From Klebsormidium nitens (taxonomy: Eukaryota > Plantae > Klebsormidiophyceae): a stretch of 64,000 bases of DNA. How positions within the stretch are numbered: position 1 is the stretch's first letter; each line of letters starts with the position of its first letter. The position numbers and the translations under genes were made by a program. The notes below the pieces were generated by a model. That model searched no databases. It worked only from the letters and a program-made list of their open reading frames with translations, and was not told where the DNA came from. The stretch covers positions 1 to 64,000 of the forward strand of contig DF237435.1 of NCBI GenBank assembly GCA_000708835.1, read 5' to 3'. Positions 15,278-26,506 of the stretch are shown in pieces.

Positions 15278-18200
15278 CTACCCCACGACTGCGCCCTCCA
15301 GCGCGGGCTCTGCTGCGTCGCCGCCTTCCTGCTCGCTGGCCGGCTGCTGCCCGCCGGTGTCGAAGGCGACGCGGAAGACGTCCTCGTATGTCTCCGCGAA
15401 GTGCACCTCCAACCCCGCTGTGACGTCGTCCGCGAGCTCGTCCCACGCGTGTGCGCACTCGGCGGGCAGGATGATCGTCTGCACGCCGGCGCGCCGCGCG
15501 GCCGAAACCTTCTCCTTGATGCCGCCTACCGGCAGCACACGCCCCACCAGCGTGATCTCGCCCGTCATCGACAGATTCGGCCGCACCGGCCTGCACCCAA
15601 CGCAGCCGCGGGGGGGCACGTCAGGGCGTGGAGCAAGCAGCGAGGCAGAGGCAAGGCTTAGAGATACACGGCTACAGCAAGACGTCAGCACCACTGCAAA
15701 GGAACACGAGCAGCAGAGAACGGTGTGATTAGTCGCAAGTCGCAAGGTCGACGTCACTTCGCAGGACATTCACTCTTGCAACCGACTCGGGGCGCGCTGC
15801 CAGCCCATCGTTTGAAGCAGAGGTGTCAACGTTGTTGCGGTGTGGAAAGTCCGCGCCTCACTTGTCCATGGCGAGCGAGAGCAGCGCGGTGACGAGCGTG
15901 ACCCCCGCGGACGGCCCGTCCTTGGGGGTGGCGCCCTCGGGCATGTGCACGTGGATGCGCGCGTGGTCGAAGTAGGCGTTGTCCGGCTGCTTGGCGGCGA
16001 GGACGCGCGCGGCCACGCTGTGCGCGATGGTGGTGCTCTCCTTGAGCACGTCGCCCATCTGGCCCGTCGCCAAGATGCTGCCCTCGCGGCTGCCGGCAGA
16101 CTTGCTGATCAGACTGCATCAAAGACAGGGGGCGCGCACAGGATCAGCTTTGAGCCCGCAAGGGTTTGAACAAAGGGAGTGATGATAAGCTAGCTCTAGG
16201 AAACAGCACGGGGCGAAGCAACAACAAACGCTGTTTAGACCAGGGAGAACATGAAGATACCGTTTTGGATTGGGTCCTCGAAGATCGTCAAAGAGATTCA
16301 GTCAATAGATAGTACCAACGACGCTCTAAAAGGACGCTTTGGGAGCGGTTGAAGCTTGGACTCCGCCTCCGACGCCTAGACTTCAACCCAACATTTCACA
16401 GACCACAGCCGAATACAAAAAGCAGCCAAGCATTGTCCGGGCCTCTCTTTCCCCCCGGCTTCCCTCACCTGGCCTCGATGTACGCGATCTGGCCGCCTGC
16501 CTGCGTGGTGACGAGGCCCATGACGACCCCGGTGGGCGTCTGCGCGTACCAGCGCTCCTTGCCCCACTTGGGCCGCCCCAGGTACTTGCGCAAATTGTCC
16601 AGCCCCACCACCGTGCGCGTGCTCGCCAGCACAACTTCCGTCCGCTCCGCCTCCACGCGCAGCGCCGCCTCCTCGCCGCCCACCGCCGCGCTCGCCCCAC
16701 CATCCGGCCGCGACGCCCCGCTGGCTGCGTCCTTCACGGGCCCTGTCGTTCCTGGCGCCACGTCGAGGGTCTCCCCTTGCCTGTCCGCCGACTCCCCTCT
16801 CGATCCGGCGCCGGTGCGCCCTCCCTCCGCAGCGTTTGCTGCTACTAGCTGAGGCTCGCCCGGTAACGTCCTGCTGGCCGTCGATGTCCCCCTATCTTCC
16901 AGCTCCGCTTGTCTACTGCTTTCTGAAGATGCCCCCCTTTCGCCAGCGGCTACCCCGTGCCTCTCTCTGCCACTCCCGCCTGGCAGCCTCTCCTCTGCGC
17001 GCTCTGGCGCCCCGCGTGCATCGTCGCCCAGCCTGGTCCCCGTGCTTTGCGGCCCGTCCTCCTCCACGACCAGGTTGACGCGCGGGGTGGCACAGCGGAC
17101 GGGCGCGGCTCTCTGCCTACGCTGCAGGGCCTCGATGGTGCCGGTCGGTGGCTGCGCTGCGTGCGGGTTGAGCACACCCAGGTCCGCCGCACTCAGCTTC
17201 GGATAAACTCCTGCACAACCGAGCCGTGCACCAGCTTGAGTGACTGTCCGCACAGGCCAGGTGAGAGAGGCAGCACCGCCCTGCGGACATAACGCAGATG
17301 CTAGCACGAGTTCGTTGACACAAAGCCTCACACCGCCAGTGTAACAGCAGTCGCTTTCTTCTTCGCCCTCTTGCCCCCTTGCTTGCAGCAGGGCTCACCT
17401 TCTGATCGCTCCTCAAACCAACGATGCAGGCCCCCTTGCTGCTCGGCCGCCCGCGGTGCCTCGGTGCGCTCGCGCAGGTATGCCCACAGCAGCTCGTACA
17501 GCTCCGCCTCCACGTGCGGGTTGCCCCGGGCCCGCTCCTGGGGGGTGGCCTTCGCCCCCTCCTGGCCGCGGGCCGGCTTCTTCAGCTGGAGCAACGGGCC
17601 CAGGGCGCCCCCTTCCGCCCGGTTCAGAAGGCGTCCCGGGACGGCCCTTCTGTAGTTGTCAAACAGGAGCTGTCTCAGGGCCCGCTGCTCGCGCACGTCG
17701 CCAAAGCTCTCCGCAGGAAGCTGCAGGACCCGGGTGGTGTTGAGGAGGGGGCCGTAGAACAATTCCGGAGACCACAGTACGGCCCGGCACGCCTTGAGCA
17801 GCACGGCCCCCTTCGCGTCGTGCAAGTTCTTCTTTCCTTTCGCCACCACCCCGAGGAGCCCCCCCTGACCCGGGCTGCTCCCAAATACCGCCTCGACAAC
17901 TGCCCGCAGTGGGCCGGCTGTTTTCGCAAAGCTGTGCATCAGCGCGGCTTGGAGGGAGTCCAGCGCCTGAGAGAACAGCGCGTCGGGCTGCGTGCTGCGC
18001 ACGGCGCGCTCGGTGTTCATGTGCAGCAGCGCTTCCAGGAAGCCTGCCGCCGCCTGCGCCCCCTCGTCCGCCTGCCGCTTCCAGCCCCCGGCCGCATCGA
18101 AGAGGCGCCAGCGCTCAAAGAAGGCAGTCGCGGCGCGCACCAACTCCAGGTCCACCTCAGCTGCCGCTGGCAGCGCCTGTCCCGGGAACAGCTCCTCCAG

Positions 18201-21200
18201 GGGGTCCCCCAGGCGCCACCGCTGCCCGCTGGTCCGCAGGGGGGGCTGTTCCCCAAGCGCATCGCGCGTGGCCACGTCCAGGTCGAGCAGCTCGAGGCCG
18301 TCGTGCAGCTCCGCCGAGGGCGGCGCCTTCATCCGCTCCACTGCGTACGCCGCCTGGGCAGAGTGCATCAGCGCCAGCCGCAGGCGCAGCACGTCCCGCG
18401 GGGAGCGCTGCCCCGCGCGCACCGCTGCGTACTGGGCGTGTGCTGCGGCGTCTGCGGCCTTCTTGTGGCCCTCCAGAATGCTCTGTCGGGACGCACCGCT
18501 GCTGTCGCTCTCCAGAAACTTGAGCGTCAGCTCGGCCTGCGCCCCCCGGCCCAGCTCTCCTGGGGACGGAGTCGGCAGTCGGAGATGGGGGAACAGAGGG
18601 GGGCGGGCGTCGGTGGCAGGCGGTGCCCGCTCTAGTTCCGCGGTGCCGCCCTGAAGTTGCTTCAGCACGGCAGGCTCCTCGTAGAGCAGCAGGGGCTCTG
18701 CGCCGCCCGGCGTCGGCTTCCATTGCAGCGGCACCTTGCGCGACACGAGCGCCCACTCCAGCGGGGTCCGCCCCGAGAAGCCCAGCAGCCGGCCCACGTC
18801 TTGCGCACGCCGCGCGTCGATCTCCGTGCCCCAGGAACAACCTTGCGCTGCCAGCTTGTCGAAGAGTGGCGCGTAGCGCGTGCGCTTGTGCTGCAGGTCC
18901 GCCAGCAGGAAGCCGTGCAGCAGCAGCGCGCCCTCGTTGGGGTTGCGCGGCCGCGTTGCCTGCGCGCCGTAGCCGGGCCAGGCAGTCAAGGTGCGGAAGG
19001 GCCCCTCCAGCACGGCCAGCCAGTGCTGCGCGCGCGCACACACCCGCAGCTGCTGCTGTTCCTCCGTGCTCAAACCCGCCACTCCGAACTCAGCCCCCGC
19101 TGCGCCGCTGGTTGCCTCCGTAGACTGCCCCTGGCTCGCAATCGTCTCTGGTCGCAGGGTGGCCCCCTCGCCTGGCCAGCGCATGTTGTACCCGTCCGGC
19201 AGGATCATGCTCCTCCCATCAAAGACATAGAGCGCCTCGTTCCGCAGCAGCAGTGGCGTGAGCTCGCGCAGGAAGGCCAGGTTCCAGGCGTCCCCTTGCT
19301 GCTGCGTCAGGCGCGGATACGTCAGCCCCTCCAGGCACCCCGGGTTCACCGCCGTGTTGTACAGCACCGCCGCCACGTGCAGCCCCAGCAGCCCGTCCGT
19401 GTCCAGGTCAGCGGGCACGGCGACCCCCGGCCCCGTTTCGAGCGCGGTCCAGTCCGTCGCCAGCCCGAACTCTGCGAGGGCGTCCTTGAAGCCCGCAAAT
19501 GCCGCCTTGAGGTCGTCCGTCTGCTCGGGCGGGAGCTGCCCCGCGACCGCCTGCCCCAGCAGGTCCGCAAAGCGCTGCAGCGGCTCCACGCGTGGCGCCT
19601 CTACTGCGGCCGCCAGCCACTCCGCCACCAGCGTCTCCGCCTCCAGCTCGCCCGAGTCCGCCGCCACCGCGTACGCCGCTGCGCGCTGCACCATCTCCCG
19701 CGCGGCCGCCACCACGCCGGCGCTGGGCGGCAGCTGGCCCGAGTACATGTTGCGCAGCACGTGCAGCGCGGGCCACAGGCTCGCCTCCACCTCGCGCCCA
19801 CGCCCCTCCAGCGCCGCTCCCCGACCCCCGCCGGGCCTCTTCACAAATGATTGAATTGCCCGCTGCGCATCCTTCGACTCAGGGTTCTGCCACAGGCCCC
19901 GGGGCACCATGTCTAGGCCGGGCCTCGCTTCCCCCTCGCCCACCATCGCCCCGCTGCTGCTTTCCTCCCCAGCTCGCACATTCGAACGGCCCACCTCCGC
20001 TCGCCAGTGCCGTTCAAGAGCGCGCCACCAGGACCGCAGCAATACCACCCCCTCAGCATTGCCCTGCGGGAAGGCCGCTCCCGCGTGCTGTCGCAATACG
20101 GCGGCCCCCTGGCCCCCCTCCTGTGCCGCGGCTGCCGCCCACGCCTGGCCGTCCACTGCCGCCTTGATGCCGTCCAGCTGTGCCTGCGCCGCCGCAGGCC
20201 GCCCCTCCAGTGCGCGCCCCCACTGGAGCAGCAGCATCTCCACCTCCCCCAGTGCCGCCTCCACCGTGTGCCGCTCGTCGCCCCTGCACTCCGCCCACTC
20301 TCCGCGCACCCCTTCCAGCTTCTCCCGCGCCCACACTGCAATCGCCACCTGCTCCATTGCTGCCACCGCTGCTTCGTTCTGCTCACCGCCCGCCTCGTCC
20401 GCCTCACCCGTCTCGTCCGCCACGTCTTCTTGCCCCTCCCTCGCGAGCAGCCACAGCGCGGTTTCCCGCGGCTTCCCGCTCAGCTCCGCCATGACGGCCA
20501 CGTCGTCCTTGCCCAGCAGCTGCCGCACCTTGCGTGCGTGGTGCTCCACGTCTAGCTCCGCGCGCGTCAGCGGCCACGCAGGGTGGTCCACGGACGGCCC
20601 CGCGCCCGCCTCCACCTCCGCCACCATTTGCAGCTCCGCTTCCAGCAGGTCCAGCTCGCCACCCTCCCCCGTGGGCAACTCCGCATTGGCCAGCAGCGCG
20701 GTCAAGTCTTCTGCCTGATTCGTGTTGGTTGGCCGGAGCGCGTCCCACCGCTGCAATGCCTCGTCCAGCTTGCGCAGCTGGTACTTGAGGGTCCGCACGC
20801 GCGCCGCAAATTGCGGATCGACGCGCGCACCGGCAGCTTCCGTGGCGCGCGCATCCAGCGGCTGTGCTGTGCCCACCACCAACTCCGGAACCTCCTCCTG
20901 TGCTCTTCCTCTTTCCCCGACCACAGCCGTGACGAGCTCCGAACTCAACCCGCCTCCCGAATTGCCTGCAACTTCCAGACCTTGGCGTGTCTCCTCTTTT
21001 GAAGGCGTCGCTTGCCTCGTTTCCCGCAGAACCGCCGCAGCAGAAGTCTCTCCTCCAGTACTGCTTGATGGCGCGTCAGCTTGGCGCCCTTGCGTGGGCC
21101 CCTTGTTACCCGTGACCACCACTTCCATCCCTGGACTCCCCACGTTCCTGCCGCTCTTCTTGTTCCCCCACGGTCGCCACCCCGACCTCCCTGCGTCCCC

Positions 21201-24200
21201 CACTTTGTGCTCTGCCGCCGCTCCTTCCCCTCGGGCGCGCATGCGGTCCAGTAACGTCTCCAGCACCTCCATGCTCGCACCGGCACTCTTACCCGTACCC
21301 ACCCCCCGTTCGTTTCGCCCAGCCTTTTGATTGCTGCCCCGAGCTGCCTCCCCATTCAGTGGCGACTTGGCATCGCTTCCTGGTGGCCCTTCCAGGTTCC
21401 AAGCTTCCGTTTCAGAAACCGAGCTCCCGCTCGTGCCAGCTTCGAGTTGCCTCGAACTCAAGTGCTCGCCATTGCCCTCGAATCTTAAGCTTTCTCTCAC
21501 GTCAAGCCCTCCAACAAAGGTACTGCTGTCGCCCCCGTCTGCTGTCTGTGCGCTGCCCTCCCCCCGTGATGCTTCAACCACCACCTGCTCCCCGCTGCTC
21601 GCACCTCGCTCGCCCTGTTCCATAACCCCAGGGGGAGTACTTCCATTCGGAAGGCCGCCTGGGTTCGCGGTAGTGTCCGTCGTGGCTAAGGGCGTGCTAG
21701 GCGTGGTGCGCCCTTCCTTGGCCTGCCTGGCGTCCACCAGCTCCAGGGCAATCTGCAGTTCAAGGGGCACACGAGCAGAACATTCAGTCGGTGAAGCTAG
21801 CAGCTCTACGCAAGACCAGCTGTTGGCGCTGGCCGCAGCAGATTGTCCGCAGCTGCTGCGCTCTACCAGAGAAAAACCAAAATGCTCCTGATGGCTTCAG
21901 AACTGCTGATCGTGGCAGACACATGATCGCGCATGACCTGCGCAGGCTGGACAGGCAGTGCATCGGGGCAGCCCAGGGGGGCGGACGTTGTGTCCCCAAC
22001 AAGCCTGTTCAGCAGCAAACAAAACCTTGTGCATGGAGTGCAGCCACTGCTAGACCGTGGCTCGCACCTTTCTGCAGATCTTCTCGAGCTGGCGCTCCAT
22101 GCCGCGGCACCCCGCTTCGAAGGTGTACTTGGTGGCAATCGCCTCCAGCACGGCGTCCGTGATCTCAACCTGCACCGCTAGGCAGATCCTTGTCAACACA
22201 ACAAGGACTTACGGAGGCAGAATCTGTTGACAGAGCTGTTCAGAACAGCCGTCCTAGCCTCGCAAATAGTCGAGAGTTGAACCCTCAGCGATGAAAACGA
22301 TTGATTGAACCGCAAGCTTGCTCTGACAAGCTCAACTTTTGGAAACTGAAACAGGTCTAGGAATGTCGTTCTTCTGCGGGCTTTCTCAGCCACACCAGCA
22401 CTCCGCCAAGTCACGTCTGACTCAACAACCTTTTTGGCGGAAGGAAGTGGGCAGCTTTACCTGGTCCGGCGCCAGGCCGACCTTGTCCTTGATCTTGGGC
22501 AGCAGGAAGCGCTTGGCGATGTGCACCTTCTCCGCGGTCGAGTACCCCGACAGCTCGATTGTCTCCATGCGGTCCAGCAGCGGCCGAGCGATCTGGCTGA
22601 TGTCATTCGCGGTGCACACAAACAGCACCTGCGCACCAGCAGGTGGGCCGCTCAGACTTGAGCGGACGGCAGGACAAACCTACATCCGACTTCACTCGAA
22701 ATGAGCACGAGAACCCTGTGAGCTTCGAAGGCCGCAATGGTTTTGGAAGGGCCTGCCACCATGGCCTGCCACCAGAAGAACCAAGTTCGATACACGTAGC
22801 AAAGTCTTCCCTGTGTTCTGACAAGTTCCTTGAATCTCCTTCTGTGGGCTTATTACAGCTTATTATCCATCAACTCGACAGATTCTTTCTGCACGTCTAA
22901 ACGGCATACGCGCAATGCACCCACGAGATCAGAGCTACGCCTGTGCGTGCCCGTCTGCCCGTCTGCCCGATGCTTGTGCGCGCTCACCTGCGAGAGGTTG
23001 AGGCCGACCTCCATGTAGTGGTCCTTGAAGTCCTTGTTCTGCTCGGGGTCCAGGATCTCGAGCAGCGCCGCACCGGGGTCGCCGCGGTAGTTGGCGTGCG
23101 CCATCTTGTCCACCTCGTCGATGAGCACCAGCGGGTTCATGACGCCCACCTGCTTCAGCGCGCCCACCACCTTGCCCGGCTCGCTGCCCACGTACGTGCG
23201 GTTGTGCCCCTTGAACTCAACCGGGTCGTTCAGCCCGCCCACGCTGCGCGGCGCAAAGAGAGGCAAGATGAGACAACGCTACCGGAGAACAGAGTACTTC
23301 GCCCACGGTTCTACACCGCCATGTCAGTTTTAGTAAGGCAAAATCCTTCGACACTGACATATGAATGCTGACGAGTCGAGACTATCAACGAGACACTTCG
23401 ACCTCCTTGCAAGCTCTGGAAAGGGCAGGTGGCTTCTCCAGCCGTTCATCAGGTTCGCAAAAGAAAGAGCAGCGCAAGACACATCTTGTGCCTGCCTTCC
23501 TCTGATCCAATTCAATTTTTCAGACTTATCCGGGGAGGGCCGAAACAGCAAGGAGCGTGCTGACCTCATGCGGTGGAACTTGCGGTTGAGTGCGCGCGCC
23601 ATGCTCTTGGCGATGCTGGTCTTGCCCACCCCGGGGGGCCCGTGCAGCAGCAGGATGCGCCCCTGCGTCGTGCCCTTCAGCTGGCTCACAGCAATGAACT
23701 CCAGCAGCCGCTCCTGCCAGAAGAGGAGGCGCACGCGCCTTCAGATCTAGCGCTCACCGTGCGAATGCTCTGTTATTTGAAACTGGTCGTCGAACCTGAA
23801 GCAGAATTAGAAGCCGAGCGAAGAGAAGCGAACGCGCATGGCAGCAGGCCCCAGGGTGCACAAAACGGCAAGGTGCTGAAAGTGAAAAAGGGACAATGGA
23901 AAGTAAGAGCCACAACGGGGGAGGCAACCGAGGTAGCCGCACTGTGCAGCACGACACACAGTCCAGACACAACCAGGACAGGGCACCCAGGACAGACACC
24001 GGTCAGAAAAGCAAAGCTGCTCGAATCCTCGCATCCTCCTGATTAAAGATCAGACTCCAACTTTTTGGGGCCACGGGTTGTTTGCTGCTGCCCCTCACCT
24101 TGACTTCCTCGAGGCCGTAGTGGTCTTCCTCCAGGATGTTGCGCGCCTCCGCCACGTCATAGCGCTCGCGCGTGGTCTCCCCCCACGGCATGAGCGTCAT

Positions 24201-26506
24201 CCAGTCCAGGTAGCGCACCACAAACGCATGCTCCGTGCTCATGGAGTGCATGCGCGCAAGCCGCTCAACCTCGCGCTCAACCGCCTGGACAACAAGGACC
24301 GGGAAGTCAGATATCGGTCAGAAGGGCAGGAAATCCCCTGCCTGCTTTCCAGGGCATTGAGCTCAGACGCCTGCCTGGGGCAGCCGGCCAAGTGGATAGG
24401 ACCTTCGTGGACCGTTCTAGGTGACACCAGCATTGAACTTCACAGATCCATCTAGTGTTTTCCACCGTTTCGCCAGCTGCGGACCTGACGACACCACCGT
24501 AAGAGTTACCCCTTCAAAAGACATTTGCACTGGTAGCTGACCGCCATTATGTGCCACAATGCTTTGATCATCGGTCGAGAGTGAAACGCGGGGTTCGCTC
24601 TACAACCCCAAACAAATCATGCAATCTCCGTTGGCAGGGCTTGAAAAAGTAGTAGCAGGATGCACGAAAGGATCTTCGGAAAAAGGGGCCCTAGACACTC
24701 ACGTCAAGCCATTCTGCGGGCATCTTCCACCACTTGGTGCGAAGCCGATTCCAGTACTTGTCTGCAGCTCGCACGTCTTTGCCCATCTTGCCGAAGCGCT
24801 CTGTACGACACACGAGCATTCAAACGAGGGACAGAAGGTTACAATAGAGAGATCGAAACAATGAAGGCTGAATGAGGAGCAAAAGCCATTCTATCAGGAA
24901 TGCATCCCCACCGCGGACAATGGATCTCCAGTTGGGCCCAGTGGGCTTTGTGTGAGTTGAGCAGTTACCAAAGACTCTCAACCCGCTTTTGCATGCCAAT
25001 CACTCTCCAAAAGGTATTGTCACATCTTGATCTTGAACATGTGTCCCCATAAGCGGCGATTCGTTCCTATTGCCAAAAGCCCGCAAGCCCTGGTCAAAAA
25101 AGGCGTGCCTCACCCTGCGTCCAGCCATCTGGAAGCTGCGTCACTGAAATGGGCCGCGTCTTTGAGTCCACCTCATCCTCCCGCACTTCCTCTGGCATCA
25201 GAACAAGGGAAAAACGTTACATGAAGTAAGCCCACAGGCTTTAACAATGGCTCCTCTGAAGGGCTTGCTCGACATTCACAGGATCTCGTCTCCAGACAGC
25301 CATGTGAAAAGGATTGCACCGTCCCTCAGATAAGGAGGGACGAAGTAGTAAGTACGGGCCACCCTTGATTGACCTATGGAACAGCCATTGTGGTGTTTCT
25401 TGCCAGTCACATCATAGCTTGATGGTTCGTGCCCCACAGCCAACCTTTTTGTCTTCATCATTCGCACTTGATGCTGCTGCACCTCCTGTGGCCCCTGTCC
25501 CCATCTTACAGTGTTTTGCGACCTCCTTGCAAATAGATCCCCATGTTGTCGAAGTTACTATGCCACACTCTGTTTAGGAGCTCGACACGTCACGCTTTCC
25601 CCAGGACTTGGGGGCAAACTCACCGCGATCGGAGGGGGCCCTGACGACCGTCTTCCTGATGACCACCTTGGGCATGCCGCCGGCCTGCGTGGCTGCGGGC
25701 CCCTGTATGCCGGCCGACAGCGGCTTGAGCACGCCCGCGCGCTCCAGCACCATCAGCGACACCGCCACCGAGATGATCGCAGAGCCCCCCAGCAGGAGCA
25801 CCGACGACGCGCCCTTGGTCAGGACAGTCGCCAGGTACATGAACACGGACTGCCGCGGCGGGGCCTGCGTGCGGTTCAATAGCTCCAGCGTGTCCTCGCT
25901 CAGCTGCACCACCACCGGGACAGGCCCACCAGCACCAGCCGGGATAACAATCTGCGACGGCAGCCGCCGCTCATCGAGGCCTCCTGTTGGAATGCTGGCA
26001 ACATCCCCGCTGTCGCCCCTCGCCTTTGCCCCATCTTCACCAGAGACTTTGACAGGACCATTGGCGGGCTGCGCCTCTTCACCAACTTCTTCGTCCTCCG
26101 GCGTAAAGCCCGCCGGGAGCCAGGCCCTGAGATCGCCATCGAAGAGGGCGGGCAAGAAGGACGATGGCTCGTCAGTGAAGTGCGGATACGGCTCAGACCG
26201 ACCGGCAGTGGCTACAGCACTGCGTCTGGCTGATCGACGGACGGGAAATGTCCTGTTGTTGCCTGTCTTTGATCGCTCTCCAAACAGACTCAAACCAGAC
26301 AAGCTGCTGTTGCACTGCTGAAAAAGCACTACTTTGCTTCCAAAAAATGGTGGCTGACTGCGGCTTGCTCTGTAACTGAACCCTGGAAGGGGAGCCGGGG
26401 GGAGCCCAGAGCGCACACCACTTGGGGCCCTGCAATTTCCAGACGGCGCCCCAATTGGGCAGCAGGTAATGGTCCCCCGAGCCAAAAACTTGGCAGCGGC
26501 CGCCAT
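15278..26506 (-). CDS. LON: Lon (LonA-type) ATP-dependent protease, atypical ~2,526-aa form with a giant insertion
   Basis: Phase-consistent exons 26506-25624, 25191-25114, 24800-24703, 24284-24099, 23713-23565, 23243-22988, 22628-22461, 22169-22068, 21752-17399, 17210-16469, 16113-15862, 15590-15278 (7,581 nt in total, divisible by 3). Motifs [31 protein letters not shown], Walker A GPPGVGKT, pore loop GHNRTYVG, Walker B LIDEVDK, PLLDRME, catalytic PKDGPSAG and GGIKEK. The 5' exons are less certain than the core. Confidence 0.88.

Follow-up and report, generated by a model that had tools for sequence, protein, structure and literature searches.

A LonA-type protease gene of Klebsormidium nitens with a 1,651-residue insertion between the AAA+ module and the protease domain

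Introduction

How much additional sequence can a Lon protease accommodate between its ATPase motor and its protease domain, and which role could such an addition play? This question is raised by a gene located within the first 64,000 nucleotides (nt) of contig DF237435.1 (GenBank assembly GCA_000708835.1) of Klebsormidium nitens; this whole stretch is referred to as the window, and all positions are given in its numbering. Few proteases are as strongly conserved across life as Lon. To our knowledge, its domain order of N domain, AAA+ module, and protease domain is regarded as fixed, and the loop connecting motor and protease has so far been treated as a short, dispensable spacer. The K. nitens Lon gene is found at 26506-15281 on the minus strand. 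An initial annotation, made from the letters of the window, had interpreted an orphan open reading frame (ORF) inside this gene as a Lon exon that places about 1,650 amino acids (aa) in frame between the AAA+ module and the protease domain.

Results

The giant ORF is an exon of the mature Lon mRNA

The ORF of 1,480 aa was found at 17328-21770 on the minus strand; from stop to stop it comprises 1,522 codons (21896-17331). High GC content by itself lengthens random ORFs, and in the region of the giant exon, where GC content is 66-72%, other frames also reach 300-400 codons. In the frame of the giant exon, GC content at third codon positions (GC3) was 0.82-0.89 as compared to about 0.5 at second positions (GC2) over the whole core of the insertion; the giant ORF thus is a real coding sequence. 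Antisense ORFs of up to 403 aa also lie over the giant exon, e.g., at 17424-18635 and 18657-19850 (both plus strand). These are an expected by-product of a very GC3-rich coding sequence and not genes.

The gene model is already public. The protein GAQ89086.1 (A0A1Y1IK05; P0001 in our set), annotated as "ATP-dependent Lon protease" with 2,472 aa, is 100% identical to the insertion encoded in the window, and its exons were mapped by tblastn to 26506-15281. In the literature searched, no paper named GAQ89086 or A0A1Y1IK05 or described the insertion, and a survey of plant Lon proteases (PMC6460959) does not include Klebsormidium; the giant insertion is hence undescribed in this literature.

Logan contigs from four runs of four studies were aligned to 16700-22400. 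The runs are labelled as guessed RNA; the absence of introns at their joints identifies the contigs as RNA-derived. Every run supplied one contig (7.2-8.2 kb) that covered 16700-17209, 17398-21752, and 22068-22172 with zero mismatches. Each contig omitted 188 nt and 315 nt, the omitted ends being GT..AG on the minus strand, and the giant exon of 4,354 nt was unbroken in the contigs of all four runs. With 2.0 kb extending 5' of 22172, the contigs are as long as expected for a complete mRNA that begins at the annotated start. We conclude that the mature Lon mRNA contains the giant exon, which is read in frame with the Lon sequence on either side.

Both splice junctions that the initial annotation had predicted, 22068/21752 and 17399/17210, were present in the transcript contigs and in GAQ89086.1. 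At the first junction, the donor AAG/GTGCGA (the slash marks the splice site) follows ..EKICRK at 22068, and the acceptor CTGCAG/ATT precedes IALELV at 21752. At the second, a phase-1 donor AAG/GTGAGC after 17399 is joined to the acceptor TGCAG/GA, from which the next exon starts at 17210. The frame is kept on both sides, and the insertion between IALELV and VVGLDNL amounts to 1,651 aa, in close agreement with the predicted length.

The giant exon by far exceeds the other Lon exons (35-104 codons) in length and is more GC-rich, as might be seen with an assembly chimera, a retained intron, or a separate gene nested in a Lon intron. These explanations are refuted by the spliced contigs: RNA-derived contigs of four studies splice the flanking introns and keep the exon. 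The same layout was furthermore found in three other assemblies. We regard an artefact or a separate gene as extremely improbable.

Alternatively, the exon might be a switch, with regulated skipping or internal splicing giving rise to a minor isoform that lacks it. The exon has a length of 3n+1; skipping therefore shifts the frame, as had been pointed out initially, and would leave a truncated, AAA+-only protein. Assembled contigs, which drop rare isoforms, are compatible with such rare isoforms; however, no joint connecting the Lon halves without the giant exon occurred in the contigs of the four runs, and conservation of 1,000 residues would not be required for a switch. This explanation appears very improbable.

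The transcripts differ from GAQ89086.1 in one detail. A segment of 162 nt (16792-16953, minus strand), an intron in the public model, was retained unbroken in all four transcript contigs. It encodes 54 aa with an EDRGxS motif which is invariant in the four loci known (see below). The annotated mini-intron is probably wrong or represents a minor isoform. As the transcripts retain these 54 aa, which are counted in the insertion length given above, the product is 2,526 aa rather than 2,472 aa, with a computed mass of about 269 kDa. The parts of the gene are listed in Table 1.

Table 1. Features of the K. nitens Lon gene in the window
Feature	Position	Strand	Evidence and remarks
Whole LonA-type gene	15281..26506	-	tblastn of P0001; TIGR00763; public product 2,472 aa, transcript-supported 2,526 aa, ~269 kDa
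First coding exon, 296 aa, 888 nt	25619..26506	-	Presequence-like start, then conserved block with hydrophobic segment; without Lon N domain
AAA+ exons: pre-AAA helix, Walker A (GPPGVGKT), pore-loop Tyr, Walker B	22985..24305	-	Pfam AAA
PLLDRME exon and Lon lid exon ending ..EKICRK, phase 0 donor after 22068	22068..22634	-	Lon_lid PF22667 (at 22053-22208); PIM1 alignment
Intron, 315 nt, GT..AG	21753..22067	-	Spliced out in contigs of 4 runs
Start of giant exon: IALELV (last Lon helix residues), then ~300-aa Gly/Ser/Glu/Thr-rich linker 1	20823..21752	-	Composition; alignment; dN/dS 0.50; GC3 0.64
Insertion core, ~1,141 aa, Ala/Leu-rich; two conserved blocks with variable stretch between	17399..20822	-	Alignments; dN/dS 0.17-0.37; GC3 0.85
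Intron, 188 nt, GT..AG, phase 1	17211..17398	-	Spliced out in contigs of 4 runs; phase-1 donor common to L001, L002, L003
Linker 2, ~200 aa, low complexity with conserved islands (LNPH, C..P.INL, EDRG.S)	16612..17210	-	Includes 16792-16953
Lon S16 protease domain exons, Ser in DGPSAG, Lys in GGIKEK	15281..16611	-	Lon_C PF05362 (in 16468-17211, 15861-16118, 15281-15769); human LONP1 736-949 alignment

The insertion interrupts a LonA-type enzyme after the lid

The profile TIGR00763 (endopeptidase La) matched the protein with 736.6 bits (cutoff 608) in two stretches that bracket the insertion, and the match starts at profile position 244. LonB models scored far below their own cutoffs on GAQ89086.1. 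Walker A, Walker B, the pore-loop Tyr, PLLDRME, the lid, and the catalytic Ser (DGPSAG) and Lys (GGIKEK) were all located, in line with the initial annotation; DGPSAG and GGIKEK align with the catalytic motifs of human LONP1 (736-949). The enzyme is thus classified from its sequence as LonA-type (MEROPS S16) with all catalytic motifs intact. Its AAA+ module matched human LONP1 structures with an expect value (E) of about 1e-100 and is about 55% identical to plant LON1; a search with this module returned no insert-free protein closer than the latter. The gene is probably a diverged paralog of mitochondrial-type LonA, specific to the lineage of Klebsormidium and close relatives.

The Lon N-terminal substrate-binding domain PF02190 is absent from aa 1-345, a region in which no family at all was detected in Pfam and NCBIfam at E up to 5. 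The poorly conserved first 100 aa contain 14 Arg+Lys, 1 Asp+Glu, and 19 Ser+Thr and look like an organellar presequence. The only strongly hydrophobic segment comprises 35 aa (aa 221-255; 25742-25846, minus strand). It is nearly invariant as compared to the 47%-identical exon of the relative L001, while the first 100 aa diverge. These features suggest that this Lon may be organelle-targeted and membrane-anchored.

The insertion site was determined by alignment with Lon structures. Upstream of the insertion, ..EKICRKIALELV corresponds to ..EKIYRKAALQVV in the alignment with yeast PIM1 (chain of 7sxo); downstream, the protease part aligns with human LONP1 from residue 736 onward (EVTPENLQDFVGKP..). 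The insertion point is located after the last lid helix (..EKIxRK(A/I)AL..) and before the first strand of the protease domain. The conserved Lon parts of the gene are encoded by exons of 35-104 codons, and the two novel parts, the N-terminal exon (888 nt) and the giant exon (4,354 nt), each form a long stretch uninterrupted by introns. Each of these novel parts may thus have been acquired as one DNA piece or may have arisen by exon expansion.

The core of the insertion is conserved and under purifying selection

A word-indexed homolog search with the insertion returned the gene itself and three orthologous ORFs. These were found in the Logan assembly of SRR23617307 (locus L002, protein P0002; 84% identity in the insertion) and in the JGI metagenome contigs 3300060284 (L001, P0003; 46%) and 3300060285 (L003, P0004; 47%). 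In L001 and L002, the homologous ORF is flanked by a Lon-lid exon and Lon_C exons; L003 begins inside the ORF, so that only its Lon_C side is visible. The ORF opens with CTGCAG/ATTGC.. (IALE..) in L001 and L002, the same acceptor as in K. nitens, and in all three loci it ends at the homologous residue with a phase-1 donor AAG/GT(G/A)AG. In L002, the gene of an electron-transfer flavoprotein alpha subunit (23397-24428, plus strand) lies downstream of the Lon gene.

Identity to K. nitens was 78-99% in the AAA+ exons, 58-96% in the protease exons, 42-47% in the insertion of the distant pair, and 47% in the N-terminal exon, which was compared in L001. The insertion could be aligned with 46-49% identity over about 1,000 aa, and many Trp, Pro, Gly, Arg, and Asn residues are invariant. 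Two blocks of the core stand out (positions 161-720 and 761-1120 of alignment A2); in their better windows, 40-70% of the columns are identical for the distant pair. The ratio of nonsynonymous to synonymous substitution rates (dN/dS) as compared to L002 was 0.17-0.22 in three segments of the core, 0.37 in the stretch before the core, 0.50 in linker 1, and 0-0.07 in the Lon catalytic exons. The core of about 1,000 aa is under purifying selection.

Linker 1 is poorly conserved apart from two short motifs of 15 aa (21357-21401) and 11 aa (21096-21128; both minus strand), which may be docking or processing sites; linker 2 likewise contains conserved islands within low complexity. This is the pattern that a functional folded module on flexible tethers would leave.

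The linkers also bring up a polyprotein, in which Lon itself or organellar peptidases would cut the linkers and set free a module of about 1,000 aa, the AAA+ and protease halves being left separate or reassembling non-covalently. Long, weakly constrained linkers do flank the core, and the short invariant motifs within them could be processing as well as docking sites. However, phase and frame are kept across a divergence down to 46% identity, which is needed only if translation continues into the protease domain; furthermore, we know of no Lon that is functional when ATPase and protease reside on two different chains. A polyprotein is therefore considered unlikely.

The insertion is an orphan by sequence

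An exhaustive HMMER phmmer search with the insertion against 1.84 billion cluster representatives returned the cluster of P0004 alone. Matches to it were likewise absent from Pfam, NCBIfam, and, by profile search, the full set of PDB sequences, even at E up to 5, and self-BLAST revealed no internal repeats. Alignment-pattern scans of viral, prokaryotic, and metagenome contigs yielded no relative; the metagenome scan also missed the two JGI contigs and is hence weak. At the level of detectable sequence similarity, the core constitutes an orphan family with no relative beyond the four loci.

Structure prediction with AlphaFold2 and the four-sequence alignment gave a predicted local distance difference test score (pLDDT) of 38.7 for the core of 1,141 aa and of 41.6 for its best-conserved 286 aa. 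Mostly helical secondary structure is the sole feature of these low-confidence models worth reporting. Among look-alikes in the ESM Atlas, a weak ankyrin lead was obtained with scores of 0.87-0.91 and 97-112 of 256 shared features, less than is usual among genuine members of a family. An identity as ankyrin repeats was rejected, as no Ank family was found in Pfam at E up to 5 and self-BLAST detected no tandem repeat of the 33-residue type.

A large in-frame insertion in a conserved enzyme may recall an intein or another self-excising mobile element. No Hint, intein-splicing, LAGLIDADG, or homing-endonuclease domain was detectable at E up to 5, and the boundaries lack the Cys/Ser/Thr and His-Asn residues of intein junctions, the latter as already observed in the initial annotation; an intein identity was rejected on these grounds. 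Additionally, the boundaries are long, low-complexity, disordered linkers, and an ordinary spliceosomal intron interrupts the insertion. A self-excising element retains hardly any probability.

The proposal that the insertion is an exonised foreign gene found no support, because homologs were detected neither in viruses, prokaryotes, nor other eukaryotes, and because the GC3 of the core (0.85) is close to that of the Lon exons (0.89-0.98). By this closeness, nothing would mark the core as recently foreign.

Comparison with other Lon proteases

Yeast PIM1 carries a yeast-specific, charged insertion of about 50 residues which is invisible in cryo-electron microscopy; its deletion or replacement leaves proteolysis intact (PMC8913295). 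The insertion point is the same as in K. nitens, and the PIM1 insertion is exposed outside the ring and compatible with the hexamer. Unlike the highly charged, disordered, and dispensable PIM1 insertion, however, the one described here is about 30 times longer and contains a core of about 1,000 aa under purifying selection.

The dispensability of the loop in PIM1 is in favor of a tolerated passenger, i.e., a loop that became longer as GC-rich sequence was exonised or expanded, and that serves no function. The abundance of Ala, Gly, Arg, and Leu in the insertion is expected of GC-rich DNA, and homologs of the insertion were found nowhere in the searches. Nevertheless, a passenger is at odds with a dN/dS of 0.17-0.22 in the core, with an ORF of about 1,450 codons kept open in loci only 46% identical, and with about half of the columns being invariant in the conserved blocks. 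Moreover, the GC3 of the core approaches that of the Lon exons, so that its codon usage is host-like. We consider a functionless passenger quite improbable.

Lons of the Arabidopsis LON1 clade and of Closterium resemble the K. nitens enzyme in their AAA+ modules (about 55% identity) and share RKIAL.LV; a Closterium protein (P0147) has a loop of about 140 aa at the same place. Plant and algal mitochondrial-type Lons keep PF02190 and comprise 900-1,400 aa, in contrast to the K. nitens gene, which lacks this domain and is 2.5 times longer. Two further Lon-like proteins in Logan and JGI data (P0172, P0173; about 1,700 aa), 49-50% identical to the K. nitens AAA+ module, are also without PF02190 and have 940-1,100 unassigned residues before AAA+; in these proteins, too, the N domain of a Lon may have been replaced. 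A possible N-terminal membrane anchor ahead of AAA+, as predicted here, is a likeness to Bacillus and archaeal LonB and to FtsH; unlike LonB, the K. nitens sequence is of the LonA type, passing TIGR00763 and remaining far below the cutoffs of LonB models.

Endopeptidase La of the Anaerobiospirillum type (P0210; about 1,550-1,600 aa) likewise combines a LonA core with a large lineage-specific addition. In P0210, however, the additional ~790 aa are located between N domain and AAA+, and the lid directly meets Lon_C (1212/1215). About 100 database proteins are similar to P0210 and form with it a large group of bacterial Lons of about 1,550-1,610 aa, one of them named Anaerobiospirillum, with about 790 unassigned residues between N domain and AAA+; this is a different giant Lon insertion.

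A search with the AAA+ module found 261 long Lon-like proteins (1,360-4,326 aa). In the five examined, the extra length was N-terminal or amounted to at most about 100-200 aa at the loop. Among the remaining eukaryotic entries, many have additional Pfam domains unrelated to Lon, as if neighboring genes had been fused in the gene models. With at most about 50-200 aa at this position in other Lons, the initial statement that the loop is short elsewhere held, and an insertion of 1,651 aa at the lid-protease loop is without parallel among the proteins surveyed.

Discussion

We propose that one mRNA of about 8.2 kb would encode a single chain of about 2,526 aa. In this chain, a presequence-like start would be followed by a hydrophobic, probably membrane-anchoring segment that replaces the N domain, the AAA+ motor, the insertion, and the Ser-Lys protease domain. 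We hold this structural part of the proposal with high confidence. The enzyme is predicted to be organelle-targeted and membrane-tethered and to form a hexamer as other Lons do. Six modules outside the ring seem possible, because the ~50-aa insertion of PIM1, disordered and dispensable, occupies this very site. Linkers of about 300 and 200 aa would tether the modules at the height of the AAA+/protease interface. The core would be a folded, mainly helical domain which, as our best guess, acts as an integral platform where substrates, partners, or a membrane complex dock or are recruited, and which compensates for the lost N domain. A role as a built-in adaptor, as had been suggested initially, is plausible. 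To the reading as a whole, i.e., a single-chain, hexameric LonA with six tethered modules as a docking and recruitment platform in place of the N domain, we give an even chance.

Several points weigh against this proposal. The evidence for a full single chain lies at the level of gene and RNA. The transcripts are assembled contigs in which rare isoforms are dropped and RNA ends are not visible. Targeting and membrane anchoring are predicted from composition and hydropathy. The fold of the core is not assignable at a pLDDT of 38.7 and 41.6, and a docking platform is one of several possible roles. Finally, four loci are known, and these probably belong to a narrow clade.

Going further, the core might be a new, lineage-restricted family of folded domains that was born or captured in the lid-protease loop and took over substrate and partner selection from the N domain. 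This is a tentative idea which we regard as possible, though doubtful. If it is true, the recognition module of an AAA+ protease has been shifted from the top to the flank of the ring.

The public gene model is corrected in one detail (16792-16953). Beyond this, a transcribed and evolutionarily maintained Lon apparently tolerates, and selects for, a loop module larger than the enzyme itself, its canonical recognition domain being lost. The case tests how much cargo can be carried on the flank of a hexameric AAA+ protease. As an orphan domain of about 1,000 aa, the core has an origin, either de novo or by capture, that may be traceable with more genomes of Klebsormidiophyceae. The K. nitens enzyme is also a candidate case of a protease in which substrate recognition has changed its place.

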